Origin: Asterias rubens
Taxonomy: Eukaryota
Assembly (NCBI RefSeq): GCF_902459465.1
Contig: NC_047080.1
Span: 11,532,001-11,596,000, forward strand
Direction: 5' to 3'
DNA length: 64,000 bases
Each line of letters starts with the position of its first letter. Within the stretch, counting starts at the first letter, position 1. Positions 32,183 to 57,940 of the stretch are shown here, piece by piece. The notes beneath the pieces are model-generated. The model did not search any database. It was given only the letters and a program-made list of their open reading frames with translations, and was not told the DNA's origin. A program made the position numbers and the translations under genes.

Positions 32183-35100
32183 TCACAAACGAGAATTTGG
32201 GACTCGACGGAGGGCGGCTCTGATAATCCCATGAGGGTCGACTGTTGGCATCATGATCTACAGAAAGCATAAATATATTGTAAGCGGCGCCACAAACTGA
32301 CACAATAGTAAAAACTAGCAACCAAAGAAAACTAAAGCTTATTGCTTATTTTCAAACACGGCAATCCTTCAAAATGTCAGAGCATTTTCAACTACCTGTA
32401 GTTTTCTACAGTGAACACTTGATAAATGCACTGTTTTTGAATGTTTTACATCCAAAATTTAAAGGAACACGTTGCCTTGGATCGGTCGAGTTGGTCTTTG
32501 AAAAGCGTTCTGTAACCGTTTGTTATAAAATGCATATGGGTAGAAAGATGTTGTCAAAATAGAATACAATGATCTACACAAACATGCCTCGAAATTGCGC
32601 GGTTTTTTTTTACCTCGTCGACTAACACGGTCGGCCATTTATGGGAGTCAAATTTTTTACTCCCTTAAAATGGCCGACCGTGTTAGTTCATGACGTAAAA
32701 GAAAAAACGTGCAGTTTTGAGTGATACTTGTGTGGATCATTATATTCTACTTTTAAAACTTTTTCTAACCATATGCATTTCATAACAAACTGTTTCAAAC
32801 GATTTTTATAGACCAACTCGTCCGATCCAAGGCAAGTGTTCCTTTAAGAGAACTAAAGTAATAAAGTGTGTGCTATAAAGCATCAAAAATCTTATAAAAA
32901 TGTTTTTATCTTTGAGTATGTAAGAAAGTAGACCCCTTACATATGACATCACACTTTCAAAAATCGCCCTCACTGAGGTCAAAAAGTACACTCACTGAGG
33001 CCTAAAGAGGCGAATCATTTGACGATAGCTGTTCGCTGTGCGTAAAAACAAGAGTGGGGACTCAGTGTCCCAATAGCAATACGCAATATGAAAGGGTCTC
33101 TAGATGCATTGCAATACGCATCATCGACTGCCATCTTTGATGTATTAACAAGGGAAAAATACACGCACAGCTAGTACACGCGTGCACTTGTGCCTTGTTA
33201 ATACATCAAAGATGGCGGTCGATGATGCGTATTGCAATCCATCAATTGATCCAATGCTGTTCTTGGCACCTACCTCGTCATTATTCTCCATACCAATCTT
33301 CTTGAGGTCCGCAAGGAAGTAATGAACATTCGGCATCTCAAGCTCCACTTGATCAATCTGAATAAAGAGAAAAAATTTTCATTTCATATATTTTGGGTGA
33401 AAAGCAAACTTAGTCACTGCACAAGTCAAGAACCTAACGGAGAGAAGACATGGAATGACGTTTCAGTTTTGGTTAAACAATTGGGAAAGATTTTCTTGAA
33501 TGTTCTTTAAACCTCAGTAAAAGATGTTAATTTTACCTGATTAATTTTGGCCATCATCTTCTGAGCCGACAGATACAGAGTTTGTTGAACAGATGGGGAG
33601 AAGACACCAGTGCGCGGGGGACCAGCAAAAACATCTAGGATCGTGTTCTTACATGTCTCCCTGAAAACACAACACAACAAGATTAATTAGGATTTGAGTT
33701 TGTGCGTGGTGGAAAGAGAGGTTTGCAGTAACACAATGTGAATATCTTTTTTAAGTTGGGTTGGTTTTGAACAGAAAAGAATCCTTGGTTAACAATTTCA
33801 TAACCAAACCTACTCAAAAGAGATATACTTCAGCTTTCTTACCAGGCCTGGTCAAAGTTAATCCCAGAGATGTCTTTGTAGCACCACTTTCCAGAGACGA
33901 TGGTTGAAAAGATTCGATCCCAAGACTCGGGTAAGCTTGTGAATTTGTCTCTCACAAATCCAGCAAAACCCGACTTGGTTGTTTTGAGAATCGTCATACC
34001 CTTCAGACCTGCCCAGACAGTTGGAAGTCCTGCACAAAATAAACAGGGGGAAAAGTAGCTTAAAATTAATTGCAAAGGTGATCAACGAAACCGTAATCAC
34101 AAAGCTAGATCAGTTAGAAGAGAGCTGGCACAATTATTTGGAGGAGTCCGGTTCAAATCTCTTGTAAATTTTCTTGTTTACAAAATGTTGTAAATAAAAC
34201 TGCCACTTTTCCTTGTGGTTTATAACTTGATAATTCTTGAACTTCCTTGCAAGTTTTTTTTTTTTTAAGACTTTCTTTGCAAAGACTGTGAAACCCTGGC
34301 TGGTCTACTCATTTGAAAATATCTAACCATCCTGAGTCAGATGTTCTATTATTGCATTTTTCTTACCGTGCCGCTCCTGCCTGACCACACAGTAACGTGT
34401 AGCCTCTTGAGTCTGAATGAATGCATGGGCGTGCTGTTCACCCGACTGATCCATCCTTCTCCATGGAGCTTGTTCTATGTATATCTCTGCCCTGACGACT
34501 TGGCTGTACATCTTCAAGTAGTGCTGGCAAAGATCCATCGCAAACTGTTCTGGAGTTGTAATCTTGGGAGGATAATTCAAATACATTTCACCAAAATGAG
34601 TTAACCACAAACTAATTAAATTTGATGAAGTTTATTAGTTTTACATAAAATGAGTTGAATGAAGGGGCACAGCAATTTCCCTCTGGTAAGGGGCACCTCT
34701 AATGGAAAATGTCAATTTGCAAAAGCACAGGGCACCACAGCAAAAGCACAGGGCACCACAGCAAAAGCACAGGGCACCACAGCAAAAGCACAGGGTACCA
34801 CAGCAATTGCTGTGGGTGCTAATAATAATAATAATAATAACGAGGTCTTATAGAGTGCACAAATCCACAAAAGTGCTCAGGGCGCTATTACAGAGAAAAT
34901 TCAAACAAAAATAACAAAGAACAAATTAAATACAAAAGAATGGATCTATTGAAATGAGGTGTGTTTTGAGAGATGTTTTGAAAGAGTCCTGTGTGTTTTT
35001 TCGACGCCAGGTATCCTTTAAAATAGTGAAAATTTGTTTAAGTCTGAGACTTTGTTTAATTTCTTACCCCTTTCATCTTAGCCAGTGCAAAGATAGTATT

Positions 35101-35304
35101 TTTCTGCGAGTCTGTAGCAATAATATCACTGTTGTCACCATAAATAAAGCCCTTGTGTGTGGATAAGGACAAGTGTGAGTTGACAGAGAGCTCCTTAATC
35201 TCATGGGAATCACCAAGACGTCGGTGCTGCAACAGACGAACACAGTTCTTGCCGTAGTAAGTGCCTTCAGAGACAAACTCCATTCTTGGTCCTCCACTTG
35301 CCAT
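32183..35304 (-). CDS. UOX: Uricase (urate oxidase) copy A, 300 aa, with C-terminal PTS1 (SRL)
   Basis: Exons 35304-35068, 34562-34367, 34029-33843, 33660-33537, 33357-33274, 32257-32183 (903 nt). All introns are GT-AG with consistent phases. Motifs: YGKNCVR, DNSDIIATDSQKNT, LKTTKSGFAGF, FTSLPESWDRIFST, FSPSVQQTLY, MPNVHY; the protein ends VPNSRL*. Confidence 0.97.
32459..32847. mobile_element. TTAA-flanked MITE family B in uricase A intron 5
   Basis: TTAA-AGGAACACGTTGCCTTGGATCGGTCGAGTTGGTC ... GACCAACTCGTCCGATCCAAGGCAAGTGTTCCT-TTAA. A lone end occurs near 15545-15580. Confidence 0.85.
33108..33238. repeat. 46-bp inverted repeat (one mismatch) with a 39-nt spacer in uricase A intron 5
   Basis: ATTGCAATACGCATCATCGAC[T/C]GCCATCTTTGATGTATTAACAAGG at 33108-33153 and reverse-complemented at 33193-33238. 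Confidence 0.9.
34719..34802. repeat. 21-bp tandem repeat x4 in uricase A intron 1
   Basis: GCAAAAGCACAGGGCACCACA four times, with one substitution in the last copy. Confidence 0.95.
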
Positions 35305-37272
35305 AGTTTCTTTTTAATCTAAAATAAAAGTGCAAGTGGTTTGAATAAGAAAATCAGGAGTACCGACATGATGGCTGAACGACAGAAATAACACTTTTTG
35401 TTTTTACTTTATTGCGTGATTTGTCGTTTGAGTCGCACTTAAAATCTTAAAACAGTTGCACGAAGGAAATCACATGTCACACAAGAGAGACAACCTATAA
35501 AAAAAATGTATAAAGTTACTGACTCCATCTCACATCTGGTTTAAAACTACTCATGCTTGTTTGGAAAGAATTGTTTGCGATAACCTAACCCTCCTCCCGA
35601 CGGCCGCAGGAGGAGGGTTGCGTTATCGCAACTAATGGACATGACGAATGAAGGAAGAAATAGCAATGTCATTTAAATCTGTATGTTAACTATTCGTAGA
35701 ACCTTGTTGTCTAAAAATGGTGTTGTCCAGCGTGGCCCTTTATGTTTATTTTGGAATAGTCTAGATGACTCTTTTAAATCATTGCGTACTCTCTCAACTT
35801 TTACCAAAAAACTTAAACTCGTTTTCTTAATGAATACCAAGATTCTGATGTTATTTTTGTATGTAGAAATTGTAACAGCTTTATTTTCTGTCTTACACCT
35901 GTCAGTTTTGTCCTCACACGATGAAGTGCAAGTGTACTGTTATTTATTGTTTAAAAAAATAAAAGGATAGATATTTTTTGTTTTTTTTACATTTAGTTTT
36001 TGATTGTGAAAAATTTTCCCGACATCCTACTGAAAACACATGGCACCAGGATTTTTTAGATAAATTCATTAAAAATAATCACTCTGTTTAAATGAATGTT
36101 TCAGTTGTCTTACGTTCTTTTCGCTTCAAAATCAAATGACCTTCTTAGCAAACTACTCATCAACCTCCGTCGTCAGCAATGCAATGGTTCCCAGTCACGT
36201 AAGCACGACAACATTTTAACACGGGTACCATACCACAGTTGCCTATGAAATTTAGTTCGAAATAGTCGGGTGCCCCCAGAACATAATTATCAGAGTTATT
36301 TGGTAACCGTGGCGGGGCTATCAGGGGAGGGGCGGGGCTATCAGGGGAGGGGCGGGGCTATCGAGGGGGGTTGAAATTAACTTGTTTTAATTTCCTCCCA
36401 GAAGTTTTAATCAGAAATCATTTCATCATGCAAGGGAATCTATAGGCACCAATGCTTATTCGTTACCCACCACAGTACCATCACAACTGTGTTAATGACA
36501 GCAGTCACTTCTATGATATAGGACCTTCTGAAATCAATTCCAAAATGAGAAGCTCAACAAACTAGCCATCACAACCAACAAACACAATAAGATGAGCAAC
36601 CAACTCAAACGAAAACTTGTTATTTATTTATTTATTTAGATTAATCAAAAAAATTCTCCTCTGAAAAATTAAACAAAAATGCACCAAACCTTTATTTCAA
36701 AATTTAAAGTAAACATTAAGTTAAAAAAGTTCCAGACTGCTACCACCCACCCAAAGTGACCAACAAATTACAGAAATAATTCCCTTATGTTTCAAACATT
36801 TTAGAAAGAATCTACTAGGGTTGAAATGTGAGACAATTTTTAATTGTTGTATATATAATGGTAGTACATGTATAGTTTTTGAAACCATTTATAGTTTTCT
36901 ATATTTTGATAAACACAAAATGTACTTAGTTGAAAAGTATAGTTCAAACTGTTCAACCCAATAACCTCTCAAAACCAACTTAGCAGTAACACATCTCTAC
37001 TTTTTAGCTGAAAACAGCTACTTTTTAAAACATAAATTACAAATACAAATTCTGGAAATAATTACTGTAGCCCAAAGGCATACAGGAATTCAATTAAATT
37101 TGTTCATTCAAATGTTCACTAAAACATGACTATATCTGAAGAAAAATATGAGGGTTTTTTTAACAGGCAGGCAAAAAGATTTCAGAGTTCAGGGATTAAA
37201 AATTAAAGAATTCAGATTAAAGTCAGTAAAATGTATGCATCCATGAGAATTAGCACATAAGCATGGCAAACA

Positions 37273-40200
37273 TTATTTTATCCAAGCTGTAATTTGGTCT
37301 TTTTCAAACTGACGAGCTAGTTTCACAGACTCTGGATCAGCTGGGTTCGCTCCCCTAGGAAGAAAATATACAAAAGAAAAATTTGAATTAGACATCCAAG
37401 TACTTAAGTCTCTCTCAACAAATATGCAGTACAAAATCCACTCAGAATACATGGAGAATTCCCCCCCCCCCTGCTAGAAATATGACTCGGAAGCTTTGAA
37501 AAAGTCAATCATGCAACACTTGAATGGTACTTTGTTCAAACATGCTTTTAATGTTGTGTATTGAAAATATATATATTTCTCTGTATCTGATGGGAAAAAT
37601 ATTTTATACTTACAGATTCTGCATACTTTCAATAAAAAGTTTCAAGGAATGAATTTTCAAGTACCTGAGGTCTAAATGATGAGCACCGTCTGCAATTAAA
37701 TAAGCATCTAAGGATCCTGGTTTGGGACTTCGGAGTACCCCTCCATCTCGCCATGGATCCAAGGCACCGTTGCAGAAAACGATATTTGAAGCACTTTTAA
37801 TATCTGTGAACATCAAGAACATCAAATCAAGAAAAGGGATTATTTGCTGATTGATTAGATGAGTGCAAGAGCTTTCAAATAACACCAATTATTTATTTCT
37901 CACGATACAGATTTTTTAAGACACCGCATCACATTGATATAATTTGGAATTGAACAGTCTACAGTTTAACATGCCAGCGCTCAACCAACTGAGCTATCTA
38001 GCCCTACGTTAATAGCAGTCTCCCATTTTGTAAATATCTTTGTTCATGGGTGCCAGTTAGAAGTCATACAACAGTTAGCAGCCATATAGCTCAGATGGTA
38101 GAGTGCTGGCGCATTAAACTGGAGCTGGTTGGTTCAAACCCCACTTCGGTAAATTTGTCTTATCAACCCCAAATTATTTCAAATTCATCCAGTCAATTTC
38201 CCTTTTGATGTTCATGAATAACTTCACATAGTTATTAAAAAGAAGTGCCGCAAAAGGGGTTGTCACATTTATCCTGATCAAGATCAACACTGACTAACCT
38301 TCACCCCACATGATGACATTGAGCCATGTTGGTTTAGGTACAACGTTCCATTTTGCCTTGCAGTATGTCTCTCTCATCTCTAGTGTGAATGGTAACACGG
38401 GGAACATATCCGTCACATTGTTAGTGCCTCCTGGCAACGTAACCTCAGTGCAACCCTTAATGAACATAAACAATAAATGAAAGTTACACAAACAGCCTTG
38501 TCCCTATTTATGTTATGTTTGTCTGCCCCCAGGCATCCCAACATAAGCCTCTGCTTCTAGAGGATTTTGATTCATTCATTCATTCATTTTGATTAAGCTG
38601 AATAATGTGGCATTACAAGATAACAATATTGATAAAAATTGCAGAGATAAAATACACAAAAATTGCACCACCACTTATATAAGAAGTCGACAATAAGTAA
38701 AAATAAAGGATGCCTCCATACTTAATTTATTCCAGCCAGTGTAACCAATCCAAGGCTGAATGGAGAAAAAGTCAAATCTCTTTTTGATGGAATGAAAATA
38801 ACACCAGCCAAAGCATCTATGCCTACAAAGCACTAATAATTAATTTGATTAAAGATTAGTGCACCCTACCTGCCAGTCCCATGCTTTAGCGCTATTACCC
38901 AGTCCACAACCAGTAGGGTCAGTGCATTCAACATACTGGCTGTCCACATCCATACACTTCAGGGATCCTTTCGTACCATTGTAGAATAAACCTGCACATG
39001 AGGTATTTTGGGAAAGATATTTGTTTCAAGGGACGTTAGTAAATTTGTGTTTTTAAAGGCATTGGACACTATTGGTAGTTACTCAAATTGGTAGTTACTC
39101 AAAATAGCATTACATTGGTAATGAGCAATGGAGAGCTTTTGATATTGTGAGAAACGGCTCCCTCTGAAGTAACGTAGTTTTTAAGAAAAAGGTTATTTCT
39201 CACTTAATAAAAGACTTCAGGCCTGAAGCATTTTATTATAAACGCATCTGAAAGCACACAAAGTTGTGCAACCAGGGAGTTTTTTCTTTTATTGTTCTCG
39301 TGCAACTTCAATGACTGATTGAGTCAAAATTTTCACAAGCTTGTTATTCAATGTGTATGTTGAGATACACCAAGTGAGAATGCTAGTCTTTGATAATTAC
39401 CAAACGTGTCAAGTGCCTTTAAGAAGTCATGTGAAAGCTTGACGTAACAACAAACAGCCGGCACACATTACCGAATACCCTTGTTAATCTTGTGAAAAGT
39501 CCTAAAGACTAAGGGAATCCCAAACCTGCCAATCACATGCTTTTAATAGCGTCATTACCCAGTCCACATCCAGTAGGGCTACTGCATTCAACATACTGGC
39601 TGTCCACATCCATACATTGTAGAATAATCCTGCCCATGAGTTTTTTTAAAGATATTTATTTCACTGAACAAAAGTCAAAGGATTTAGGACAACGTAGATT
39701 TTTAACATGCTATAGGGCATGTCAATGTGAAATTTGATCTTGTAACCCATGTATGTAGAAAGAGTATGAGACATGACAGAGGGCCACTAGTTTACTTTTC
39801 TACCCTCAAAGTTCAAAAGAATATATTCAATATTCATTTCTTTGTGTTTGTTTTCTTTATTTTATTTTATTTGAAAAGCAGATTGAAGGGAAGCTTTGGC
39901 GTCTTCTCAATTCAGTACCGGTACGTGTCTGGAGTAAGGCCGGATGGCACTGCAATATGAGGGCTCAAGTTTAGCCATCAACCCAAATCAACTGCCACCA
40001 GGGGATGAAACAGGGTTACCTCCTTCACAGTGTGTAAGGATGTAGGCATGGGTATCATCCACTAGAAGCCTAGCTGGTAGAGCAGAGAATACTCTACCTT
40101 CCCAATTGAAAATGGCAGGCTTATAGGTTGCTTCAAAAAGCATGATACAAGAAGTGGACAAAGTCATCTACAAGCCAACAAACTGGGGAAAGTCTGTCGC

Positions 40201-43200
40201 TCTACTTACCAGCTCCTGCTGCCAAGCCTTTCAGTGGATCTTTTGCACTTGTTATCAAATCACACGAAGCCTGGATGAGAAAAATTAAAATCCATGTCAA
40301 AGACCAACAATCATGCTTTTTTAGCATTCATTTAGATAGATCTCCCATCAAGTTTGTGTTCTTTCTTTTCCTTTTCAAAGCTTGCCGTATGAAGTTACAA
40401 TACCTTGTGAACTTTCAGGTACAATGTGTAAACTCATTTGGGATGAGTCTTGGCTCTAAAAAGAGTCATTAGTGTGGTCTTGGTGGGTCGAACAGTGTAC
40501 TCTGCTGCTCTTCAGAAGAATAAAAAGCTTGGGTTTTAGCACACACTTGACTCAAATTCTCCACCAACCTTCTACACATTTTATTTAAAACCAAAGTTCT
40601 GCCTTACCAAAGCAGGCCTAACTATATATGTAACTTATAAACGTGCATGTCAAGTAAAACTCTTTTGGGAGATGTGTTGGCTCTAAAAGAAGAGTTGCCA
40701 GAACTGTCTTCATGGTTTGACCAGTATTTACTCTGCTCGTTTTCAGGAGAATGAAAATCTTGGCATTCATCACAAGCTCCATGGTAACATCCATGCTGGT
40801 TGAACTTGCCCCCTGTTAGCCTTTCTTCTCAACCCACCCTTCCGTAATGTTTCCCTTTTCTTGTTTTTTTTTCAACTGAAGAGAAAACATAGAAACTTAC
40901 GCTGACAGGCCACGCTGGTAGCTGCCCCAAGAATGACGCAGGGTATGGGTAATTCACCATTGCCATACTAGTAAAGGCATTCCGGACCCAGCCTTGCAGA
41001 TGAGCTATTTGTGTCTTGTCTTGTAGAGGTTTGCAAAGTTTGAACGCTGATGAGATCTCATTGAGACCTGGAGTAACAAAAGAGTTAACCCTTTGTGAAG
41101 TCTTTGCGCTGAATGTCACATCAAATAATAATAATAGTTGCTTCTTGAAAAAGATTCAAGTTAATCAAGCAGTGATGTTCATGGCACTCAAATTTACTTT
41201 CCCTTTCACTTGGCCATTTATTTTGTTCCAGCAATCTCAGCACCCTAGGGAGTATGGCCTGTGCTGCTAAGTATGTTGCACAATCAATCAGAAAAGTCAC
41301 CTCAGCCTACCCAGGTACCCATTAAATCCTAGGTGAAGAGAAGCAATTGCATTTAAGTATTACCCACGCCCTAATGACTCAGTGCACTAGCCCACTCGGC
41401 TACAACACAACATTATTTCAGAGAAGCTTTGAAACTATGGAAAGAATTGCAAAATTATGACAGAATCTCTTCAGATTTAATCTCTCTTCATCATCAACTC
41501 TTTACAGAACCAACACAAATTTTGTGAGTTCTAGCATGATATTTCCATAGGCCTACCTTTTATTCCCTGATCAGCGAGCTCATTTAATGTGATGAATGCT
41601 TGTCTGATGGTAGAGACACAAGCTTTCCCAGTTGTGCCACTTCCGAATGACTGAAACAAAGAAAAAATTACCTTGATTTTAATATCATTTCAACCTGTCA
41701 GATAGATGATATGGAGACATTTAAACAAGTTTGTCGCAGTAATTGCCAATAATGTCAATTGATCTTGTCATCGTCAACATCCAATTGAAAAGTTTTAACT
41801 CTTAGAACTTGGAGAAGTTTACAGTATTGCCATGTGAAAATCTCTTTTGACTAGTTTTGGTTCTGAAAAGAACCGGTAGTTGACAACTCAACGTTTCGAT
41901 CAGTATGCTGTGATTGTCTATAGCAAAGGTTCAAATCAAGCAGTTTTACGAAATCCATACGAATGGCACTAAGTTTTCTCTTACTTTGGTGACATCTTCA
42001 AAGAAGTAACTCTGAGATCCTTGTCCAGCAACTGAATAAATGGGTGCACTGGACGCTATAGCACCATCAACAGTGTTGGGGTATTTGAATCGCATGTATG
42101 CACTCAACATGCCTCCATAACTGCAGTCAAATTTATACAAAACATTATGAGAGAGTTATCACCCATTAAGTGAAATGTTTCGGGGTTTGTAAAATATACA
42201 CTAAACTTTAAAACCTACCATGGTTCATGATGAATAACTTTCAATTTTGGGCACTTTTAAACAATTGTCCAGGAATGTCATTTTTTTAATTTTAGTGATC
42301 TTTTCTTTGATGCGTGGGTGTCTTAAAGATCTTTTCTGTTCTGGTAAATTTTCAGATTTTACTTGAAAAGTAACCCTTTTTTAAGTTTTTAATATCTCCT
42401 AGGACTTTTCCAAAGTAAGTTAGGACTAGTCCTAACTCTTTGTGAAATCGACCCCAGTACTTTTTAGCTGATAATAAAACCTTTCAGGTGAACAAAAGAC
42501 AATTTAACTGTGTTTATACCTTCCTCCAAATGTGACTACTTTGCACTCTGGACACTTGAGCTCTTGTTTCAAGAATAAGATGAGTTCAGCATAATCTGCA
42601 AGTGCCTGCTCGATGGTTAGTAGACCAAGATTCTCAGGGATGAATGAATCATTACCAAAGGGTAGAGTCTCTCCGTAGAAACGCTGAATTGAGAGGCGAG
42701 GTACACAAGAAATAAAACGGATAGTGATGTTGTGATGATTTAGTTATGCATAAGGGGGGTTGATAAAGCCTGGTTCATACTTCCTACGAATGCAAATTTT
42801 AATGTCACAAATTAGCAAGGGAATAATTTGGAAGAGTTGAGTTGTGTTTAACTGCTGGGAAATATTACGCAGCCGTGACATCAAAATTTGTGTTGCAAAC
42901 ACCTTCACAGGAAGTATGAACAAGGCTTTATGGTGTGCTGCCCATTGGAACCTGGCTGGAGCATTCAATTAGTGTCCCATACAGTACAGTATCTGACTCT
43001 GAGAATTCCGAGAATCTATTAAAAAAGGTTTGTTCAACAAATTTGTTTGACCGGCCTTACGACAACAAAATCAAGCAGGGAACTTTTAATTTCCCTTGTG
43101 ACTCATTGATATTTTAAGTAAATTCTTAAAAAGTATGATACTACTAGGGGCGGTCGGCGTTGAATAGTTTACTTACATGCTCAGCAAATACAAGGAGAGC

Positions 43201-43865
43201 CCTGAACTCAGGAGCAATGTCAAACATCAAACCTGTGTTTTCAAGAAAGCTTGTGATTGGCCCTTCATTACCAGTGTAGAAGAAAATTGGACCTTTGCCA
43301 ATACTCCAGTGTTGATCTACAAAAACAGAAGAAAACAGGTGGAAACATCAATATAATTAAAAAGGTGTTGGAGGAAAACTCATATTTTATGATAGAGAAA
43401 ATCGTAGAAAATCCACGGGGATGCCACCACGCAGCCAAACAAATCCACACGCAAGGGCTGTCATGGAATCGAACCGGACCACAGCCATGACAGAGTCATA
43501 GACTCATAGGTGAAATGCAGGAACAAGTACCACTATGAGCCATGGTTTAGACATTTATTCCAATATTGGCAACAACAAACATTTTTTTATTATTTTTAAA
43601 GCAAAAACTGTGAAGTGACAGACAGAACTTGGTTGACGATAGGAAAACAGAAATATGATGATGATATGTATTATGACTCTATAGTATGAGACTCACCCGA
43701 AACCAAATATCGTTGTTTGAACGTGTTGTTGCCATGGCTTGCAAAGTTAAAATGGTCAATCATCTGATCAAAGTATTGTGTCTTATATGGATAAACTGCT
43801 GTACAAGAACTTAACAAAGAAATAAGCAAAAATGCCAGCAAAGAAACTGCAAAAAGACGAAACAT
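37273..43865 (-). CDS. DPP7: Dipeptidyl peptidase 2 / DPP7 (serine peptidase family S28), 476 aa, with signal peptide
   Basis: Exons 43865-43697, 43316-43177, 42683-42520, 42120-41985, 41650-41557, 41067-40901, 40270-40210, 38991-38870, 38455-38299, 37803-37665, 37354-37273 (1431 nt, GT-AG, in frame). Motifs: FFYTGNEG, AEHRFYG, GGSYGG (nucleophile Ser), NGALDPW (Asp), GAHHLDLR (His). CTDPTGCGLGNSAKAWDWQ and NNVTDMFP favour DPP7 over PRCP. Confidence 0.93.
37955..38175. mobile_element. Element with two divergent tRNA-like heads (relatives 21790-22012, 16390-16525, 63725-63835)
   Basis: Minus-strand ATAGCTCAGTTGGTTGAGCGCTGG and plus-strand ATAGCTCAGATGGTAGAGTGCTGG flank a shared core TCTCCC.ATTTTGT.AA.A.CTT.GTTCA.GGGTGCCAGT.AGAAG. 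Confidence 0.65.
39053..39422. mobile_element. MITE family A copy between DPP7 exon 8 and its duplicate
   Basis: TTAAAGGCATTGGACACTATTGGTAG ... AATTACCAAACGTGTCAAGTGCCTTTAA. Confidence 0.8.
39526..39629 (-). pseudogene. Duplicated, internally frameshifted copy of DPP7 exon 8 (pseudo-exon or alternative exon)
   Basis: Clear homology to 38870-38991, with a 22-nt deletion and a 4-nt insertion. The AG and GT boundaries and a similar upstream intron flank are retained. Confidence 0.85.
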
Positions 43866-44004
43866 TTTGGATCGTGTTTACTCGACTGAGAGCGAGCTGC
43901 AAGATTTCATTGTCACATGATTTTGTCAGGTGATTGCGTTGAATATTTTAAAACGTACTACGGAAGTGGCCGACCCTGTTTTTTCTATTACAATAAAGGA
44001 CTCA

Positions 44005-44053
44005 GTTCGACAGAGGGCGCAGAGGGCGCAGAGAGGTGCGCCCTCTGTCGAAC
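44005..44053. promoter_or_regulatory. 16-bp perfect inverted repeat containing AGAGGGCGC motifs, ~140 bp upstream of the DPP7 ATG
   Basis: GTTCGACAGAGGGCGC-AGAGGGCGCAGAGAGGT-GCGCCCTCTGTCGAAC. The regulatory role is inferred from position only. Confidence 0.45.
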
Positions 44054-46826
44054 AATAATAATGGCACAGTGACCTGCCATAGGGTTCTAATCCAACCCAA
44101 GTAAATGTCAGTGATTTCTTTACAGAACTCGGGACAGTATAACAGTGCTAATGTAATGTTATTTAGCCATATATGGTGTTAGGAAACAACCAAGTATTAA
44201 TTAATATTCTTTATCCCCGATGCAAATTAAATTAACATAATGGTAATAAAGACAAAAGATAATATATACCTGTTCTATTGTCAAAGACCTGTATTTTTAT
44301 TCTCACTTGGTGTATACCATATGCCCAAGCATAAAATAATGCAAATTTTATGCGATGGGGGTTTCGATTTGTTTTAGACATGTTGGAAAGAGTTTTCCTG
44401 TAAAATAATTTCAGACATGAGGATTGATGCTCACAATATTAAATCAATTAAATCAATAGTTTTCGAGCAGAATATTGTATAAAAATATCAAAGGGCATCA
44501 CAGATCGATTATCTGTAATTTCACGCAATTCAAGTATCACTTTGTTTTTATAATAATTATTGAGCTACTGCACACATCTGTGACATATACCACTCGGTTT
44601 GACGCCATAGTACTGTGGGTAAACCGCGGTAAGGGACTCGATCATCAAGTGGAGGCAGGGCGGTTTTCAGTTGACACTATGTTCTAAGACTAAGCCCAAC
44701 TTTACAACATTGTAGGCAGAAAATCCTGCTTGAAAAAAATACTTTGTTAACCAAACGTTGACTTGGGCACCAGTTGCAACAGTGTAAACTTTAATGATGT
44801 TTTGCTCTGTGCTTATCACATATTTTGTGCTTACAGGCTTTATGAAATTGGGCCGAAAAAACTGGAACGATTGGCATGTCGGGTGCAATACAGCATCGGT
44901 TTTCATTACGCACATGAGCCTAGGACCCCAATTAGGAAGAGTGACCCCTGGTGTTTATGTGCACCAAGCAATCGCCCGCGTTTGCGGGTTGGTTTCCTTA
45001 TATTTTATAAGACATCATGTTTACCAGAAAGAAGAAAACAAATTTGAAACTGCAATTCCTGTTCCAATACATTATACTTATAAAACAGGATACCGATCGA
45101 AATTTTCTGTTCCACACTTGATTTGGTCGCAATAAAGGAAACTCATTATTTGAAAAACAGTATACATGTAGATGGTTATGTTGCCACAATAAGATCTCTA
45201 AATGTAAATTATTAAACTTCTAGAAATGCCTATACACAGCGGCGGTGCCGCCCACTGCACCGGGATCCACCCAAAAGATAAAACAAGATCCCTCAATAAA
45301 AAATAATATAAACTGATGTTAATTAATTTCATAGATCGAGTGTCCTCGGATTGTTAGCCGGTATAGCCCACAGTTAAATATATTACTGAAAATTCAGAAA
45401 GTAGACCGGAAACTAATTAAGCGTGATACCGTCAATCAATTTTAGACCATTTTTTCAAATTTTTAATTAGTTGAATTTTCTAAGAAATAGGTTGCCTCAC
45501 GTTGGCGTTCAATTCGAAGGTCAGGGTTCTCCAGTTTGTGATGATGTCCAGTCCTTAGCGGTGTTGAGAGCTACAACCATCTGGTGTTTGCGCCTCTGCC
45601 GACTGGTCCTTTTCATAGCGGTCACTGCCCCGTTAGAGAGATGGAGCCTCGTAATGAGGTATTGTTATAAAAGAGTTACCAAACGCGTGCTGATCAACAG
45701 ATGTATGAATACGTTTCTCTGTGGTCATTCGTTGCATTCGGCTGTTCAGGAGAGCTCTGTATTGCTTTTCACTCTGTTCATCTTGGTACCTGCGTGATCT
45801 GTGTGCTATCACAGGTGAGTTTTGGTTTGGATGATTAGAACTGCATTATTTTATCCTGAAGACGATCAGAGCAAAGTGCTCGAAAAGTCTCGTAAAACAT
45901 ATAAGGTGCTACATAATTTTGGTCTCATAATTTTAAACAAGAAAATGTAAAAACCTGTCTTAGAATGTTTGTGTGTGTTCAAGCGCCTTGCGTATACGTT
46001 TTGGTTACTTACTTACGATGCATCAGTTATTTCCTATACAGTGTTTTTTTTCCTTCTATTGCCAAAGTTAAGAGAGAGTTTCATACGGTGTTATTGCAAA
46101 CCTGACTAGATTGAGCAAGAACGATTCATCACTGAAATTTAAAGTAATACATACGAATTTTTAAGTGTGAATTTGGTATTAACCATCCTAGTATAGGCCA
46201 TAAAAAAAAGTTAATATTCATTATCCCCGATGCAAATTTTAGTATTATGATATGATACATGTTACGACGTTTTGCACGCCGGTGGTCGAACTTGTTTGGT
46301 CCTGGCAAAACTTGAAAATATTAAAAACTTTGGACGTCAAAACATTGTCAACAATTTTGATAATTAAGTTCAGTCCTTGGTGAAAGATGTCTCCTGATAT
46401 TATAATAATGACGACAAGTGGCAGGCAACATTTCATAACACACTCAATCATATCTTACTTCCACCATGCAAAGTTTCAAATCCTACTCACACTCAATCAT
46501 ATAATCAACAGCAGATGGTGTGACGGGAGTCCGGTACTTCTCAACTCACTATTGTTTAAAAACAATAAAGTGAAGGTCTATATCATTTGGAATTGTTACA
46601 GTTTGGTCAAAGACACTGGACACATTCGGTAATTGTCAAAGACCAATATTTCTCACTTGGTGTATTCCAACATATGCATAAAATAACAAATCTGTAATTT
46701 TTTTACTCAATTGGTTATCGGAGTTGCAGAAAAAACACTTGCGTGTGTTTTTTGTGTGAAATTTCTTGACAGACCACCGTGTGCTATTTGCACCACTGTG
46801 AACAAAGAGGGCGCATGATTCAAATC

Positions 46827-46980
46827 ATAGACCTTATCGCAAATACCAATGCGCAAGCGCAGACTGTTGAATGAGGTGCATTGTGGGATAGATATGGATC
46901 AAAGTTTGATACCAGCAAGACCACAATGCACCTAATTCCAAGCTTTACGCGCGCGCCCCGGTATTTGCGATAAGGTCTAT
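46827..46980. mobile_element. ATAGACC-type MITE
   Basis: 21-bp perfect TIR ATAGACCTTATCGCAAATACC. Confidence 0.75.
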
Positions 46981-47090
46981 TCGCGTTTCTGGCGTGCCCG
47001 CAGCTGGACGTGAACTGGTTCGTCTCCGCTTGGAGGATCGGAAACACACAGAGGCTTTATTGGCTGTTAAGTCAACTTTTTAGTTTCTGT

Positions 47091-47325
47091 AAGTCGACTT
47101 GGTGAGATAAATTATGTCAGTTAGTCGACTGATCATTTTATCTAAGTCGACTTGGTGAGATGGATTATGTCAGTAAGTCGATTTACCATTTTATATAAGT
47201 CGACTTGGTGAGATAAATTATGTTGTTAAGTCAACTGATTGTTTTGAATAAGTCGACTTAGCAAGATAAAATATGTCGGTAAGTTAACTTATTCCACGAA
47301 ATAAGTCGTCTTGATGAGATAAAAT
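47091..47325. repeat. Degenerate 53-bp tandem repeat (about 4.5 units) built on the AAGTCGACTT palindrome
   Basis: AAGTCG(A/T)CTT recurs at 47091, 47144, 47197, 47250 and 47303 (period 53), with a half-period variant between them. Confidence 0.9.
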
Positions 47326-47847
47326 GGCACTCCTGGAGCTCCGTACACAGGGACAGTTGTAACAGAGGGAAAACTCCGGACTCGGGATTCTATACGCCAA
47401 ATCGTTTACACCCATATCTAAACCTAAATGTAGAGTCTTGAGCCCGCGAGTGAGCAGTGGTGCAAATAGTTTACTATTTTTCGACTCCGCTGATGTTCCG
47501 CTTGTAGTACAGGAGGCAAATTCATCATTACTTAAGAATAAAAACACAGTGTGTAGAGGTTGTTCTGTGCATGAATAAGGATTAAGGAGTAATTCCAAAC
47601 AGCAAAGTGTTGAGAGATTTGAAAGGAATTGTAAATATCAAAGAAAGTTAATTTTGCCAGACAACTTCCAGAGCTGTACTGTTGTTGTTTGGATGAGTGT
47701 GTTTGGCAACTCTTGTGTATCAATGGTCGTACTTAATCTAAGCCGACCAAGGTGTGTCAAATTAAACATGTAATCCCTTGAACCCACACTGCAACCATTG
47801 GATACCAATTCACAGGAATGGAACGAGAATCTACAAAATTACCATAT

Positions 47848-47958
47848 GGCCCTTTTCGAAACCACGACTCTTGTTTTGACAACAATATTGCGCGTGCTTT
47901 GCGTAGGCCTAACTCTGATGACGAATCCAAAGCCGAAACCGTGGGTTCGAAAAGGGCC
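47848..47958. mobile_element. Small MITE ~140 bp upstream of the uricase B start codon (relatives near 51065-51170 and 63400-63550)
   Basis: TIR GGCCCTTTTCGAA[A/C]CCACG (18/19); the interior ATTGCGCGT[G/A]CTTTGCGTAG is shared with the copy near 63460. Confidence 0.7.
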
Positions 47959-48095
47959 TTTGATTACAATTAGTTGTTGGTTGTGACGTCATGAGGTCTT
48001 TACGTAAGGCAGACCATTGACATAAACAAAACAAAAATTCCATACATTTTTTCAGAGTTGTAACATTTTCGTCAAGCCTCCGCTACCAGCTTAGA

Positions 48096-50592
48096 ATGGC
48101 CAACGGTCATTTTACAGATGTGGACTACGTCTTAGACGGGACTAATGTGGGCAAGACGCACGTTCGTCTACTCCAGCATCGACGTCTTGGTGCCCACAAA
48201 CACGAGATTCAAGAACTGCTGGTCAACACGAGCTTATCTTGGGACACACACAAGGAGTTCGAGCACAGCGATAATTCTGACGTCATACCAACGGACTCAC
48301 AGAAAAACACCGTGTATGCACAGGCCAAGATCATAGGGGTGGGTTTCCTTGGTGATTACTCAAAACTAAATAAGTATACAAACTAACTTCGAAGGGATTT
48401 TATTGAATTTTGGAGATAAATCCCTTCTAAGGAATGCAGTTTTTGAGAAGAGGATTTAAAAAAAAATTCAATAAAAAACGTTTCATGCATGAAATTTTTC
48501 TCATTAATTACTGTGTTTTCCAATGACGATTTATCAGAACCATCATCACTCCATCAAAGAGATTTACCTACATGGAGTCACTGCAATGATATTTATTAGT
48601 ATCCTTCTATCATGCAAACCTTGAAGTCTTATATTGAACTTCATCAAAGTTAATTAATTTTAGATTTTACTTATTTTGATGAAATGTGTTTGAAACATTC
48701 TCCAAAGATTACAACTCCGGAACAGTTTGCGATAGCTCTCTGTGAGCACTTCTTGAAGACGTACAGCCAAGTCGTCAGGGCAGAGATATACGTAGAACAA
48801 GCTCCATGGAGAAGGATGGATCAATCTGGTGAACAGCACGCCCATGCATTCATCCAGACTCAAGAGGCTACACGTTACTGTGTGATCAGGCAGGAGAGAG
48901 ACGGTAAGGGGGTGGGGATCGATGGTAGACATTGCACATTGCAGTTAATCAATTCGAAGTCTTAGAGACGTCGAGACTCACGACTTGGCATATACACTGC
49001 TAACACGTTAGTGTTATTGACATCATGGGTGTTGCCACATTGTAGATACCAACAATTTTCAGAGGGTTTCCTTAAGACCCTCTGAAAATTATTGGTATCA
49101 ACAATTCCTGTCCAATCATCATAAAAATCTTTATGATATTAATTTAGCTACCGGGCAACCTTGGTAGTCTAGTTGGTAAGACACTGCTCTAGAATTGCAA
49201 GGGTCATGGGTTCGAATCCCACCGAGTAACATGCCTGTGATATTTTTTTCACAGGACTCGGGAAAGTACTGAGTATACAGTGCTAACACACATCGGTGTA
49301 TGGGTAAAAACCAAAATTGATATTATTTTTTATTCCCTCTTCGGTGTGCATGTATGTGACAATACTCAATAATGGTGTCAATTTTAACACATATGCTTTG
49401 CACTGCATACATATCGTTGGTGACTGAGCAAATAAACTAAACCTCACATTAATTCTTCCACAGAACTTCCCACAGTGTGGGGAGGTTTAAAAAACATGAA
49501 AATCATGAAAACCACACAGTCTGGCTTTGCTGGTTTTGTCCGAGATGAGTTTACAAGCCTACCAGACACAACTGATCGTATATTTTGCACGGATGTCTGG
49601 ACAAAATGGCGATACTCGGTCAGCTCAGGAATCGACTTTGACGAAACTTGGTAAGGTTTATTTATTTATTTTTTGTTTTACCTCCTGCCCCCTTGATTCG
49701 CCTGAGAGTAACGCTAATCAGATTCAAAATTGTGTACATAAAAACTGATATCTTTTTCCATAACTACATTACTTCAAAGTGAAATTTTTTTCAAAATGCT
49801 TTATACTGTCGAGGGCTGCTGTATAGGCTTTTTTATCAAAAAAAAATGTGCATTGTCTGTTTTAAGAGTGATTAACAACGGCCCTCGAAGCTTCCATTGA
49901 AGTATGACTCTTGGAATCTGATTGAGGAGTATTCACTTTGCTTTTGATTTGCAGGAAAACATGTAAGGAAAGTATTTTGAACGTCTTCGCTGGATCTCCA
50001 GACACTGGCGACTATTCTCCTTCGATCCAAAGAACCATGTATCTATCAGTGCATAAAATGCTAGAGATGGTATCCCAGGTATGTTGGAAGTGTCATGACA
50101 CATTATCGGAACTTTTTTTGAAAATGGCGCTGCTTTTCGTAATTTTCTTTGAATGATTTGGTTATGAACTTTAAATACATGTGTCTCTTAATTACAGATT
50201 GGCAAAGAAAGGCCGCTAGGCGTACATCTTTGGTTGGACTTTGGTAATGCCTTCTGGCTTCAGGCCGTCTTTAAATCCATAAAAATATCGCATATCCTTG
50301 TTTTGACTTTTCATTTTTCCTCATCTAGATTGATGAAATTGAACTGGAAATGCCGAATGTTCATTACTTTTTAGCCGACATCATGAAACTGGGAATGAAA
50401 AATGACGGAGAGGTAAGTTTATAGGCGGCAAAAAAATATAATAAGGGAAAAGTCTGCTGCCACCTAGCGTCAAAAAAGTCCCCTAATTAATGGTTTTGAT
50501 TGTTTTTGTGTTTGTAGGTAATGATGCCAACAGGTTATCCACACGGGATGATCCGATTGGCTGTCCGTCGACCAACTGGTGACAAAGTGTGA
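48096..50592 (+). CDS. UOX: Uricase copy B, 302 aa, no C-terminal PTS1 (ends TGDKV)
   Basis: Exons 48096-48338, 48708-48903, 49464-49650, 49955-50078, 50329-50412, 50518-50592 (909 nt). Exons 2-6 have the same lengths as in copy A (196/187/124/84/75). Motifs: VGKTHVR, VIPTDSQKNT, MKTTQSGFAGF, FTSLPDTTDRIFCT, YSPSIQRTMY, MPNVHY. Confidence 0.97.
49145..49320 (+). mobile_element. Copy of the same tRNA-derived SINE-like family (uricase B intron 2)
   Basis: GGTAGTCTAGTTGGTAAGACACTGCTCTAGAATTGCAAGGGTCATGGGTTCGAATCCC...CACAGGACTCGGGAAAGTACTGAGTATACAGTGCTA matches 26665-27147. Confidence 0.85.
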
Positions 50593-53500
50593 GTGCCTCG
50601 ATGGGGGTCTCAGAAGACACCCCGACTTGGATTGCGCACCACTGTGCCCAATTTTTTTAAAGCCTTGACAAATCTTGCTTAACAGAAACTTTACATTATT
50701 GCAATTGGTGCCACACTCATTTTTTGCTTAGCGAAGAAACTTGCTAAGCAGAAGATCTGCTTAACAGCTGTATGAAATTGAGTACACTGTTTGGTTTGGG
50801 TCTTAATACCCAAACCTAATAGTATTTTTATCTCAAAATGTATTTTATGGAATTTGTAAGAAGCGTGTTTGCGTGGCGTTGTAAGGAGCTTTCACTGGAT
50901 CAGGGGTTTCGAGTGTTGGGCAATTCTGGCTGAAATTTCATCTGAGATATTTCATTAAAACAAACTCAATTTGAAAGCCTTATGGACATGAAAATAAAAT
51001 CAATGAGGCTCTGCACAGATTTTGAAGCACATAACCTTCAATACAACAGTTAACACATTGAAACAGAGGCCTTTTCTAAACCAAGGCGTGGGCTTGGGCC
51101 CCAGTAGTTGTTCGGATAATGTGCTATTATCGGAGCCCCAATCTCAAGTGGTTTCGAAAAGACCCTACTTCGTCAGAAGGCTGTCGGTGTACGAACTACT
51201 TAAATTAGTAGGCATGTCAAGTTCTTATTAAATATTAGATGTTATGCAAATTAACCATTCTACATGTTCGTAGTCTTCAAAGACCGGTGTCAATTCATTT
51301 TATTTTACTTTACTCAAGTTTAGAAATTGAAAGAAAAAACGCCCTTGTCACACGAAGTTGTGTGCTTTCAGATGCTTGATTTCGAGACCTCAAGTTCTAA
51401 ATCCGAGGTCTCGAAATCAGATTCGTGGAAAATTACTTCTTCCTCGAAAACTATATCACTTCAGAGGGAGTCGTTTCTCACAATGTTTTATACCATCAAC
51501 CTCTCCCCATTACTCGTAATCAAGAAAGGTTTTATGAATGCTAATAATTATTTTGAGTAATTACCAACAGTGTCCACTGCCTTTAAAAAGTAATATCTGT
51601 ATTTATAATGAAATGTTCAATGCAAACATAACCCATCATTTTACAATATGTAGGAAGTCCAAAACTTTGAGTCTACCAGGCCTGGAATTACAAAGAGCTG
51701 GAATTACTCTGTTGCCCCTGGTATTGGCCTTGGTGCCCCTCCAAATATTTCTCTTAAACTTTCCTTTCAAGTATGAACTTTCCAGGCCTGACCCATGGGT
51801 AAATGTTATCCTAATAATTGGGTCTATGAATTCATCATTGCAAAAACCTATATTTCTGAAAGTTTTATATACTCAGCGCCTTGAGCCTAGATATATGCGC
51901 TATAATTATAAGACTTCGATAGTATCATCTCAGTACACAATGCTGAACCATATCTTTAACAATAATTATAATTTATTTACAATTTTTACATATGCGGAAT
52001 GATAAAGCATTCTTAAACAAATTAAGGTTTCCATTTTCAGCTATCATATTACCCAGGAAAAACAAGTCAAAAACTTAACAGAATAGTAGGCCTTTAACTG
52101 CATTATTGATTAGGTTTTTAAAGAAAAAAAATTCAGGCAATTTAATAAGAATCTGACTGATTTTCTGAGGGAAAAAAATATCACAAATCAGATTAGAGTA
52201 CAAAGATATCATAATTGATCCTAGGTGTGTAGCTTACCAAGTTTGAAACTTTTCTTTAAACATTTGTTACACCTGTTAGTTGGTCAATTCTGAAAGCATA
52301 TTAAAGTGAGATTACAAAATAAAATCCCACTTGCAACGGCAAGGAATTTTTGGCCTAATAACACACAAGGAAACCATGACAGCATACAGACCAGGGCCCA
52401 AACTAATTTAGAGCCGCATTTAAGCAATAAGCAAGAAAAGCAACTAAGCACGACTCAAAATGTTCCAGATTATTAGCAGAAAATTCAGCTTGACAACATT
52501 CTCTGCTAAGCAAAAGATGAGTGGGGCACCAGTCACAACATTGTAAATTTAATGGAATGTTGGCTGGTAACCTGTTTTTGCTTAGTAAGATTTCCCTGTG
52601 CTTAGCAGGTTTTTGTGCTTACAGACTGACTGGAACAAGATTACTCGCCAAAATACATGTATCAGTTGTGACTGGTATAGTGATCATTTTTGCTAAGCAG
52701 AACATTGCTTCCTGCTCACAGCAGCTGTATAAAAACTTGGTCCTTGTCTAGGCAATGGTGCCAGATAAAAGGTTTCTATAGGAAATTTTGTTTTCTTAAC
52801 AACATTTAAAAAAACTATTGATTCTTTACAAGTTACATTCCAGGATAGACATCGATTTTATCAAAAGTAATTTTCTTAAGCAATTTCATGTAGATTTAAT
52901 TAAAGATATTGCACCATACTATCTGTGTATTGATTTTTGTGGCATTGTTATTGTCTTGAGTATAGTATTAAAGCAAGCTGGGGGTAATAAGCCGACCTAG
53001 AAATCAAACCTGTGGTGTTATGATCTTGTTTGGCTCCATTTCATAGAGCTGCTTAAGTACAAAAATGTTGCTAAGCACAAAACAATTATGCTTGCAATTA
53101 TAAGTCTGCCTGCCGAAATACTATATAACATGTATCATCTAAGACTGGTATCCAGTCAATGGCACAAATGAAATTGTATTTTGGCTGGTGACCCTATTTT
53201 AGGTAAGCATAATTTTACCCTGCTTAGCTACTTTATGTGCTTAAGCAGCTCTATGAAATCAAGCCATGAGGTGTTCTTGTCTTATCATAATCTACATACC
53301 AACTACCAAGTGTTGAGTTATTACACGTGTAGGCTGAAGGGTTTTGATATAGGTCAACTCCTAGCCCAAATACATAGAGACTTTGAAGCAGATTTCAGCC
53401 AGTTTCTTTAAAAAAGAAATTATGCAAATCGCCAGACACACAAGGCCTGAAGGCCACTTCAAGGTGTGGGCTACAATTATTTTATTCCAGAGGCCATTGC

Positions 53501-53632: not shown

Positions 53633-56600
53633 TTACGAGGAGCTTGAGGCAGGTTCTGCAAACGAATGCGGTGATGTTGGTGTCACAGGAGTAGTAACTG
53701 CTTCTTTACTGGGTGGGTACAAATGGCTGAGGAGTTTCCCAGATTCGTTTCCGACACGTTGCTGGAGTTTACGTACTCTTTCCTACAGATCAAAAGAAAA
53801 CAAAATATAGAAAGAAAATTTGTCATAAATCTATCAGAATAAATAATTGCTCCCTATTGAAAAAAAAGCATGCTGCCATTTAAAACTCTGCAGGGTCATA
53901 GCCATAGGACTTCTTTTTTCGTCAGCAATGACCTCTGGTTTTAAACAGCCATTCAAGACTCTATTGGCAATCGCTTATTCCCCTTTTCCATGCTGCTTAA
54001 ATTGAGTAAACCTCTCATAGATTGTAAAGCCAGGAACATGCATCATTTCAAATTCTACCTGACACGGACTGCAAAACAGCATGCAAATTACTGAGACATG
54101 TACAAGCAAGCATGACATGGGATAACGGGTTTCATCAAGAGGTCTTAAACTATTCTCAAATAATTCTGGCCATTGGTACTTAATTAAAAGTTTTACTAAA
54201 AAAGTATTTTAAAAATTAACTCTTGTGTCTGTAATCTATCTACATGTACACATAGGCCTGTTTGTACTTGGTGCTTGTTTACCAACTACATTGTTCATGA
54301 TAATGTGAAACACAAATGCAAAAATCAAATACTAAATATTCAAGTTATTCTTATAAAAAGTAGCATCCCCATTGTGCAGGTACAATGTACACACAAAGCA
54401 GCACTGGGTTTAAGTGGGGTATTAGGTAAGGGCTTCTTCGTCTACCTAAAACAAAATACAAACAAATTTACAAAGCAAAGAGTGATGCATTGAAACTGAT
54501 GACATATTGTTTTACACTGGAATTCTTAATATCATGAAAGTATAAGAACAAAACTTCAGACTAAAATTATGTGGAAACTGGAAACATCTACAGACATGCA
54601 GCGCTCAGCATTTAAATATGGGACAAACACTGATGCAGCTGTAGAATTCACACACAGTCTTTACAAAGCACTCCAAGCCAATACATTTCACAGACAGATT
54701 TACACACTCATGCAGTGTGTGCTGCATGCTGCTTAAAGACAGTGGACACTATTGGTAATTGTCAAAGACCAGTTTTCTCACTTGGTGTATCCCAACATAT
54801 ACATAAAATAACAGACCTTGTGAAAATTTGAACTCAATTGGTCATCGAGGTTGCGAGATACTAATGAAAGAAAAAACACTCTTGTCACACGAAGTTGTGT
54901 GCTTTCAGATGCTTGATTTCGAGACCTCAAATTCTAATTCTGAGGTATTGAAATCAAATTCGTGGAAAATTACTTCTTTCTTGAAAACTACATCACTTCA
55001 GAGGGAGCCTCTTCTCACAATGTTTTATACTATACCTCTCCCCATCTTACCAAGAAAGGTTTTGTGCTAATAATTATTTTTGCCTAATTACCAAAAGTAT
55101 CCACTGCCTTTATCAGGCATGATGGTCCTTAGAAAAAAGTAGGAATACTTTATTGAGTACATGGAGTCAAGGACTGACCATAATGGTGTAGGCTCTAAAA
55201 AATGTACCATACTTTTTTAATCACAATTTTTCTGATTGTTTTCAAGGGTAAAAAAAAACAGAATAAAGTAGGAATATCATGCCTGCTCAATGAAACAAAA
55301 CATGCAAAACAAACTTGGCATTGTACTTGCAATGAGCGTTGAGCAACACCCAAATAACATTCAGTTGTACCTACACAATGGGGTGAATATAGAAATGATT
55401 GAGAGAATGGGTTGTTCACAGAATGGAACCCCCAGGAAAGTCAACCAGGGACTTCCGTTTGGCTGATGTCTTGGCGATATGCAAATGAAGTCGGCTTAGC
55501 CGATCCTGCAATAATCAGAGAGATTACGGTTAAGGGTGGAGTACCTCTTAAATTAATTACTCAGTCGCAACACAAATGGCTCTGTTAATTTACATCTTCA
55601 CATCCAATATAAGATCTTGGTACCTTGTTTGCAATAAGCCTGATAACTTTTTTTAAATTTCGCCCAACTCACAAAACTACTACTACTACTTTAAATAACC
55701 AACACTGAATAAACTTTAAAAAGTTCTCCATTCTGAAGAATTTTCTTTTAAAATGAACAACAGGGCACCCATGCAATGGTGAATTCCTACTGGAGCATTT
55801 CAAGGGCATGGAGGCAATTGCCGTCTTTGCCTCCAGGGGGGCATGGAGGCAATTGCCGTCTTTGCCTCCAGGGGGGCATGGAGGCAATTGCCGTCTTTGC
55901 CTCCAGGGGGGCATGGATGCAATTGCCGTCTTTGCCTCCAGGGGGGCATGGATGCAATTGCCGTCTTTGCCTCCAGGGGGGCATGGAGGCAATTGCCGTC
56001 TTTGCCTCCAGGGGGGCATGGAGGCAATTGCCGTCTTTGCCTCCAGGGGGGCATGGATGCAATTGCCGTCTTTGCCTCCAGGGGGGCATGGATGCAATTG
56101 CCGTCATTGCCTCCAGGGGGGCATGGATGCAATTGCCGTCTTTGCCTCCAGGGGGGCATGGAGGCAATTGCCGTCATTGCCTCCAGGGGGGCATGGAGGC
56201 AATTGCCGTCTTTGCCTCCAGGGGGGCATGGATGCAATTGCCGTCTTTGCCTCCAGGGGGGCATGGAGGCAATTGCCGTCTTTGCCTCCAGGGGGGCATG
56301 GATGCAATTGCCGTCTTTGCCTCCAGGGGGGCATGGATGCAATTGCCGTCTTTGCCTCCAGGGGGGCATGGAGGCAATTGCCGTCATTGCCTCCAGGGGG
56401 GCATGGAGGCAATTGCCGTCATTGCCTCCAGGGGGGCATGGAGGCAATTGCCGTCATTGCCTCCAGGGGGGCATGGAGGCAATTGCCGTCATTGCCTCGT
56501 GAAGCATCATGCCTCTGCTTAGAGCAATAGATCGTACAAATCTTCACCTCTACTGAATCAGGGTTGGGTAAGGAATTCCTTCAGTAAAATAAAAGGAATG

Positions 56601-57940
56601 CAAACCTACCTGAGCATTCTGGATGATATTACTTATAACAGCAATCTTTCGCTTGGAATTCATCAGCTTCTTGACGTAAGGGTCTAGCTCTATGGGTGGT
56701 TCTCGAGACTGACCTAACTGTTTCAAAACTGAATTTGAATAAAAAAGAAAAAAATCTTTGCAAATAAGAGGGCAATGGCAATGGATATGTATGGGAAAAA
56801 AAAGGTTCTCAAATAAAATGTTAAAGTTTGTATTGTATTATTTATAAATTAATCAAAAGTACCTTCATCAAGTTCTTCAATTTGATGTCTAAGTTCTAGT
56901 TGGCTTTCTCTGAAATAAAAAGTACAAAGTGGATTACAAATATTAATACAATTCCAACACAAGGTTCTTAATAGGCCCCCTAACACTTTATTTAAAAAAG
57001 AGTATGCATGTAGTGTTATTTACCAGAACATGGGGTTCATTGCAATTCCCGCCTGATTGATTTTTCTGAATGGCCGAAAGGCACTTTGAGATGGGATAAG
57101 GGGCTTACAAAGCCCCTTTTCCCATCCCACAGTGCATTTCGGCCATTCAGCAAAATCAGTCAGGGGTAATTGCAATAAACCTTATGCCACTTTTTAGTGT
57201 CAGTGTCAACACTCAACACTGTGGTCAGCGCAAAGCAGAATGAAATGGCTGATGGTAAGTACAAACTATTGTAAAAAAAATACCATGGGCATAAAAATGA
57301 AAATAGTTATGTGCTTAACACTTCAAATTAAGATGAAAATCAAATTCAAAGGGTGTTTACAAGTTTTTATACTAATAGTAATACCCTGGAAAATAACCCA
57401 GGAAAATACACAAAAAACACCAGAAATTACTTGAAAACTACTTAAGGATAACTTTCCGTATGGCGCCACCACTTTTTCACTCATTTTTACAAAAAGGGAT
57501 ATCTCATTGAGGTAAATAAGATACTATATTATTTCATATCAAATGAAAAACTGGTGGCGCCATACGGAAACTTTTCCCTACTTAAATACTTAGATTAAAT
57601 CAAATATGGTACTGCTCCTGAGGACTGTCTAGAGAACAGTTACCGTGTCCGTATTGTTAGTTTGTCAATTAATTCTCAATAATATTATTAGTCAATTCAA
57701 CAAAAAAGGTATTCGTTTTGGTAAAATAAAAATTAGGGGAAAGTTGTGGCAGGAATGAGACATGTAATTATAGCAGAATACGTACCTCACAAGTCGCACT
57801 CTCTCATCAACTTCTTGCACAGCTGGTTTGAAGAGTTCTAAGATTCCAGCCGCCATGGCTTCACGGTTTTCAGTCGGAGTTATTGCCGTATGTTTAGCAT
57901 TTTCTCCTCCTCCTCCGGATCCTGCGATGGTGGCCGCCAT
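53633..57940 (-). CDS. SNAPIN: SNARE-associated protein Snapin (BLOC-1/BORC subunit), 156 aa
   Basis: Exons 57940-57786, 56909-56863, 56728-56610, 53782-53633 (471 nt, GT-AG, in frame). AMAAGILELFKPAVQEVDERVRLVRESQLELRHQI...ELDPYVKKLMNSKRKIAVISNIIQNAQERVRKL matches the recalled Snapin core (AEGLLEFLRPAVQQLD...VRESQVELR...LDPYVKKLLNARRRV...QNAQERLRRL). Confidence 0.92.
54733..55112. mobile_element. MITE family A copy in SNAPIN intron 3
   Basis: TTAAAGACAGTGGACACTATTGGTAATTG ... TAATTACCAAAAGTATCCACTGCCTTTA. Confidence 0.8.
55804..56498. repeat. 35-bp minisatellite, 20 units, in SNAPIN intron 3
   Basis: Unit GGAGGCAATTGCCGTCTTTGCCTCCAGGGGGGCAT, with only two variable positions (GGA[G/T]GC and GTC[T/A]TTG) and no spacers. 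Confidence 0.98.
57034..57181. repeat. Foldback (hairpin) with ~72-bp arms and a 3-nt loop in SNAPIN intron 1
   Basis: The arms align over their whole length with a handful of mismatches; centre GGGGCTT-ACA-AAGCCCC. Confidence 0.9.
57453..57570. mobile_element. Small MITE in SNAPIN intron 1
   Basis: 19-bp perfect TIR TTTCCGTATGGCGCCACCA. Confidence 0.7.

Follow-up and report, generated by a model that had tools for sequence, protein, structure and literature searches.

A selectively maintained uricase paralogue of sea stars lacks a peroxisomal targeting signal and probably works outside peroxisomes

The window analyzed here, a 64-kb stretch of Asterias rubens DNA, contains two intact uricase genes, copy A on the minus strand and copy B on the plus strand, the models of which we rebuilt from the sequence. 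Copy A (32183..35304, minus strand) encodes a 300-amino-acid protein that ends in the PTS1 -SRL, and its six exons (35304-35068, 34562-34367, 34029-33843, 33660-33537, 33357-33274, and 32257-32183) measure 237, 196, 187, 124, 84, and 75 nt. Copy B (48096..50592, plus strand) encodes a protein of 302 amino acids without a PTS1, in six coding exons (48096-48338, 48708-48903, 49464-49650, 49955-50078, 50329-50412, and 50518-50592) of 243, 196, 187, 124, 84, and 75 nt. GT..AG borders were found at all introns of both copies, and the translations were 100% matches to the NCBI proteins P0001 (copy A) and P0152 (copy B), both named "uricase-like [Asterias rubens]". The Pfam family PF01014 (Uricase) was matched by all large exons and on both full proteins, with exons 1-2 and exons 3-4 of each copy matching profile positions 3-139 and 3-98. 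Each protein has a tandem pair of uricase T-fold domains, and the top PDB matches were uricases (E = 1e-85). The rebuilt models and the exact protein matches bear out the description, given in an earlier note on this DNA, of two intact six-exon GT-AG paralogues. The same note had argued from terminal exons of equal length (75 nt) that the targeting tag was lost by substitution rather than truncation, and this also holds, the C termini being ...RRVPNSRL* in copy A and ...RRPTGDKV* in copy B. No third uricase copy or pseudogene remnant was found in the 64-kb window by tblastn.

A peptidase S28 (prolylcarboxypeptidase-like) gene (37270..43865, minus strand) lies between the two uricase genes, with its 3' end toward the start of copy A and its 5' end toward the start of copy B. 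The exons of a Snapin-like gene (53688..57919, minus strand) are colinear with the region downstream of the PTS1-bearing uricase of Patiria and serve as the marker that puts copy B in the "distal" slot; one or more fibrinogen-related domain genes (59773..63373, plus strand) are also colinear with Patiria. Comparison of the two copies confirmed gene conversion between them in exon 2. The tract covers exon 2 and approximately 70 nt of the upstream intron on the copy A side (34362..34632, minus strand) and positions 48637..48908 (plus strand) on the copy B side, with 89% identity between the two, and the synonymous p-distance was 0.21 in the exon 2 tract versus 0.6 to 0.9 in the remaining exons.

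Copy B is transcribed, but weakly compared with copy A, and its splicing follows the model. Spliced transcript contigs in runs X1 and X6 joined exons 3-4-5-6 and continued colinearly with the genome past the TGA of copy B to 51357, giving a 3'UTR of at least 765 nt (50593..51357, plus strand). The stop TGA at 50590-50592 was kept in these contigs, and the overlapping GTGAGT at 50589-50594, which the earlier note had located correctly and treated as a possible donor for a PTS1-bearing exon, was not used as a donor; the addition of a PTS1 exon by this route is ruled out for the dominant transcript. Thus, RNA mapping of the 3' end, a check that the note had proposed, revealed no such added exon, and the lack of expression for which it had allowed is contradicted by the spliced contigs from X1 and X6. 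Bin depths agreed exactly with the exon model, and the introns were empty. At the 5' end, contigs from the same two runs either began at 48056 or added approximately 48 nt from an unlocated upstream exon, and the 5'UTR part of the first coding exon (48056..48095, plus strand) follows a polypyrimidine tract and a CAG acceptor at 48053-48055. Sequence words of copy B occurred in several runs that also contained copy A words. Within a run, copy B contigs reached roughly 1/10 to 1/40 the depth of the A-type exon-2 contig, depth being a poor measure of expression. The raw-read RNA runs X11 and X12, which are labelled as another species, gave almost no reads on copy B exons. Reads were mapped at 90% identity, at which repeats dominated the junctions and read ends.

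The canonical PTS1, [SAC][KRH][LM], was present at the end of 116 of the 123 other full-length animal-type uricases that we retrieved; thus, its loss in copy B is not noise. Copy A meets this pattern and copy B (-DKV) does not, and the same division was found in Patiria and Acanthaster, which have one PTS1 copy each (-SRL and -ARL, respectively) and one PTS1-less copy each (-NSL and -NSV). As judged from the proteins of these three species in two orders, the pattern is sea-star-wide and not an Asterias oddity; searches with P0152 and P0155 for further PTS1-less orthologues gave just the three sea-star genomes. The Patiria ending -NSL might still act as a weak, non-canonical PTS1. The absence of a PTS2 from copy B, also claimed earlier, was supported by a regular expression (R[LVIQ]xx[LVIHQ][LSGAK]x[HQ][LAF]) that had no match in the six sea-star proteins, the upstream 5' exon sequence of approximately 48 nt lying outside this search. 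An N-terminal extension of copy B is excluded indirectly only, in that the NCBI model begins at the same ATG. Readthrough of the copy B stop (TGA GTG, then 29 codons ending in -NLA) would not yield a PTS1, and the readthrough extensions of the PTS1-less Patiria and Acanthaster copies likewise contained none.

The comparison of copies A and B gave a dN of 0.22, a dS of 1.74, and an omega of 0.13, which is not near 1, the value that the earlier note had named as telling against a functional copy B; for the PTS1-less copies of Patiria and Acanthaster, omega was 0.07. Synonymous sites between A and B are saturated outside exon 2, yet copy B retains its 302-codon open reading frame, all splice sites, and nearly all of 81 highly conserved columns. 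The copy B protein evolves approximately 2 to 3 times faster than that of copy A. The active-site residues of copy B (K20, T66-D67, F168, R185, Q234, N260, and H262) fall in invariant columns of a 15-sequence alignment, in agreement with the earlier statement that both copies keep the catalytic and substrate residues; these columns align to F165, R182, V229/Q230, and others of the zebrafish uricase DrUox (5LL1), with residue roles taken from published work (PMC5138847). These comparisons indicate that copy B is not decaying and that purifying selection acts on an intact gene with all catalytic residues.

We scored rare replacements at columns with 90% or higher conservation across 110 other uricases. 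Four were common to the three PTS1-less proteins: Y18 (the Tyr of YGK) was replaced by V, H, and H, and the others were D54E, G58S, and V233I, all at positions 95 to 99% conserved in other uricases. Val233 is a backbone contact of the substrate and is Ile in copy B. The valvatid PTS1-less copies were also altered at Phe184 and Val188 (DrUox numbering) in a hydrophobic cluster, where the substitution F216S increased the Km 25-fold (PMC5138847). The PTS1-less copies had pI values of 5.80, 5.68, and 6.76 to 7.67 versus 8.2 to 8.8 for the sea-star PTS1 copies; among 123 other uricases the median was 8.44, and none was below 6.0. Peroxisomal matrix proteins tend to be basic, in line with the pI distribution of these uricases; a literature search found no citable statement on this. 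Because near-invariant pocket residues changed together with a strong acidic shift in the PTS1-less proteins, an account of copy B as the same enzyme in a new place may be too simple.

Overall, we favor, at somewhat better than even confidence, the reading that selection maintains copy B as a functional paralogue in the uricase family that has no peroxisomal targeting signal and is likely cytosolic, and that copy A is an ordinary peroxisomal uricase. Copy B probably works outside peroxisomes. Since it carries neither a PTS1 nor a PTS2, and neither a signal peptide nor a presequence, it most likely remains in the cytosol, where it would assemble its own tetramers; with the full catalytic set retained, these would be predicted still to oxidize urate. 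Its kinetics or specificity may differ, as near-invariant residues of the pocket are replaced (the backbone-contact Val by Ile, Gly by Ser, Asp by Glu, and the Tyr of YGK), and its surface would have turned acidic.

The alternative that survives best, although we regard it as fairly unlikely, is that copy B is still peroxisomal, entering by piggyback as an A/B heterotetramer assembled in the cytosol with the much more abundant copy A or through a non-canonical PEX5 interface, and tunes the peroxisomal enzyme. Transcripts of both copies occur in the same runs with A in large excess, and this co-occurrence, which makes heterotetramers possible, is a point against the cytosolic reading; moreover, uricase is a tetramer with active sites at subunit interfaces (PMC5138847), and peroxisomes can import oligomers (PMC4680570). 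However, mammalian work reported that PEX5 binds new UOX monomers and blocks their oligomerization before import, that monomers are the better import substrates, and that PTS-less ACOX1 is imported by piggyback inefficiently (PMC4422123), which weakens the heterotetramer proposal of the earlier note. The known natural cases are two, LDHA/B with the readthrough form LDHBx and SOD1 with CCS, in which a PTS-less subunit could likewise enter with a PTS1-bearing partner, but there most of the protein is in the cytosol and the carrier is scarce (PMC4680570), whereas in the sea star it is the PTS1-bearing subunit that is abundant and the copy B stop offers no readthrough PTS1. The strong acidic shift would also be unexpected for a subunit in an unchanged compartment.

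It is somewhat less probable still that copy B has been neofunctionalized, keeping the T-fold tetramer for another purine-like substrate or for a binding or regulatory role instead of bulk urate degradation. The altered pocket, including the Val233 contact, might mean that the substrate is no longer urate, and the valvatid changes in the cluster where F216S raised the Km, as well as the faster evolution of copy B, would fit this explanation, but the urate-contacting residues and the catalytic Lys/Thr/His/Asn set are all kept and the replacements are conservative. We consider it very improbable that the missing PTS1 of copy B is an artefact of annotation or of the isoform modelled, with a targeting signal being added in a minor or tissue-specific transcript by an upstream exon or via the GTGAGT at 50589. 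The motif exists, an unlocated 5' exon lies upstream, and assembled contigs drop rare variants, but two independent assemblies pass through the stop into the 3'UTR, the NCBI models agree, and no conserved counterpart of the donor-like motif occurs in Patiria or Acanthaster, where the corresponding copies are PTS1-less as well. A young pseudogene in the making, with PTS1 loss as its first lesion, would fit the low transcript depth and faster protein rate but is effectively refuted by the near-intact gene at saturated synonymous distance and by the low omega values in all three species.

Both sea-star copies belong to the family of animal peroxisomal urate oxidases (for example, zebrafish DrUox 5LL1 and mouse UOX): they have two PF01014 domains, match 5LL1 at E = 1e-85, and keep the catalytic and urate-binding residues of the family, and copy A shares the usual C-terminal PTS1. 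Unlike these enzymes, copy B and its valvatid counterparts lack [SAC][KRH][LM], are acidic rather than basic, and are changed at the Tyr of YGK, Asp54, Gly58, and the contact Val. The usual rationale for a peroxisomal uricase is that catalase there removes the H2O2 made by the enzyme. Reviews place uricolysis of animals in the peroxisome (PMC5138847, PMC8919083), and our literature search found nothing relevant on echinoderm or starfish uricase or on cytosolic animal uricase and no report of an extraperoxisomal animal uricase. The cofactor-less bacterial uricases of Arthrobacter and Bacillus (PDB 2YZB, 1J2G, and others) are soluble and work without a peroxisome or PTS1 but are distant from the sea-star copies (E = 1e-47 to 1e-17), which arose recently from the animal peroxisomal enzyme. 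Yeast IDP2/IDP3 likewise arose by duplication, with copies that differ just in C-terminal tripeptide and localization (PMC4526572); that split was demonstrated experimentally, whereas the sea-star localization is predicted and concerns an H2O2-producing oxidase. If a PTS1-less uricase is conserved and constrained in sea stars, it would offer a natural experiment on the movement of such an oxidase out of the peroxisome, with defined accompanying changes in pocket residues and surface charge. Copies A and B also form a matched natural pair that would serve for comparing PEX5-dependent monomer import with piggyback import, for learning which sequence features fit an enzyme to a peroxisomal or cytosolic milieu, and for testing soluble, acidic animal uricase scaffolds.

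In sea stars of two orders, both copies share one S28-uricase-uricase-Snapin locus, but by synteny the PTS1-less slot is Snapin-proximal in Asterias (Forcipulatida) and S28-proximal in Patiria and Acanthaster (Valvatida). The Amphiura uricase locus had no neighbor gene within 10 kb and thus gave no gene-order clue to the ancestor. The duplication is not datable by dS, synonymous sites being saturated in all interorder and most A-B comparisons. The maximum-likelihood tree paired the copies within lineages, with support for the valvatid pair of 97/95, or 92/92 when exon 2 was left out. A topology in which the PTS1-less copies are monophyletic was not rejected (AU P = 0.09 and 0.15), and the positional-orthology topology was marginally rejected without exon 2 (P = 0.02 to 0.04). 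Because the slots differ and the tree pairs copies within lineages, the tag may have been lost twice. We hold it a serious possibility, at somewhat less than even confidence, that the losses were independent and struck different positional copies, each accompanied by D54E, G58S, V233I, loss of the YGK Tyr, and the acidic shift. If so, the extraperoxisomal uricase would be a clean case of convergent relocalization, and would imply that selection in sea stars has repeatedly favored oxidizing urate, or producing H2O2 or 5-hydroxyisourate, outside peroxisomes.

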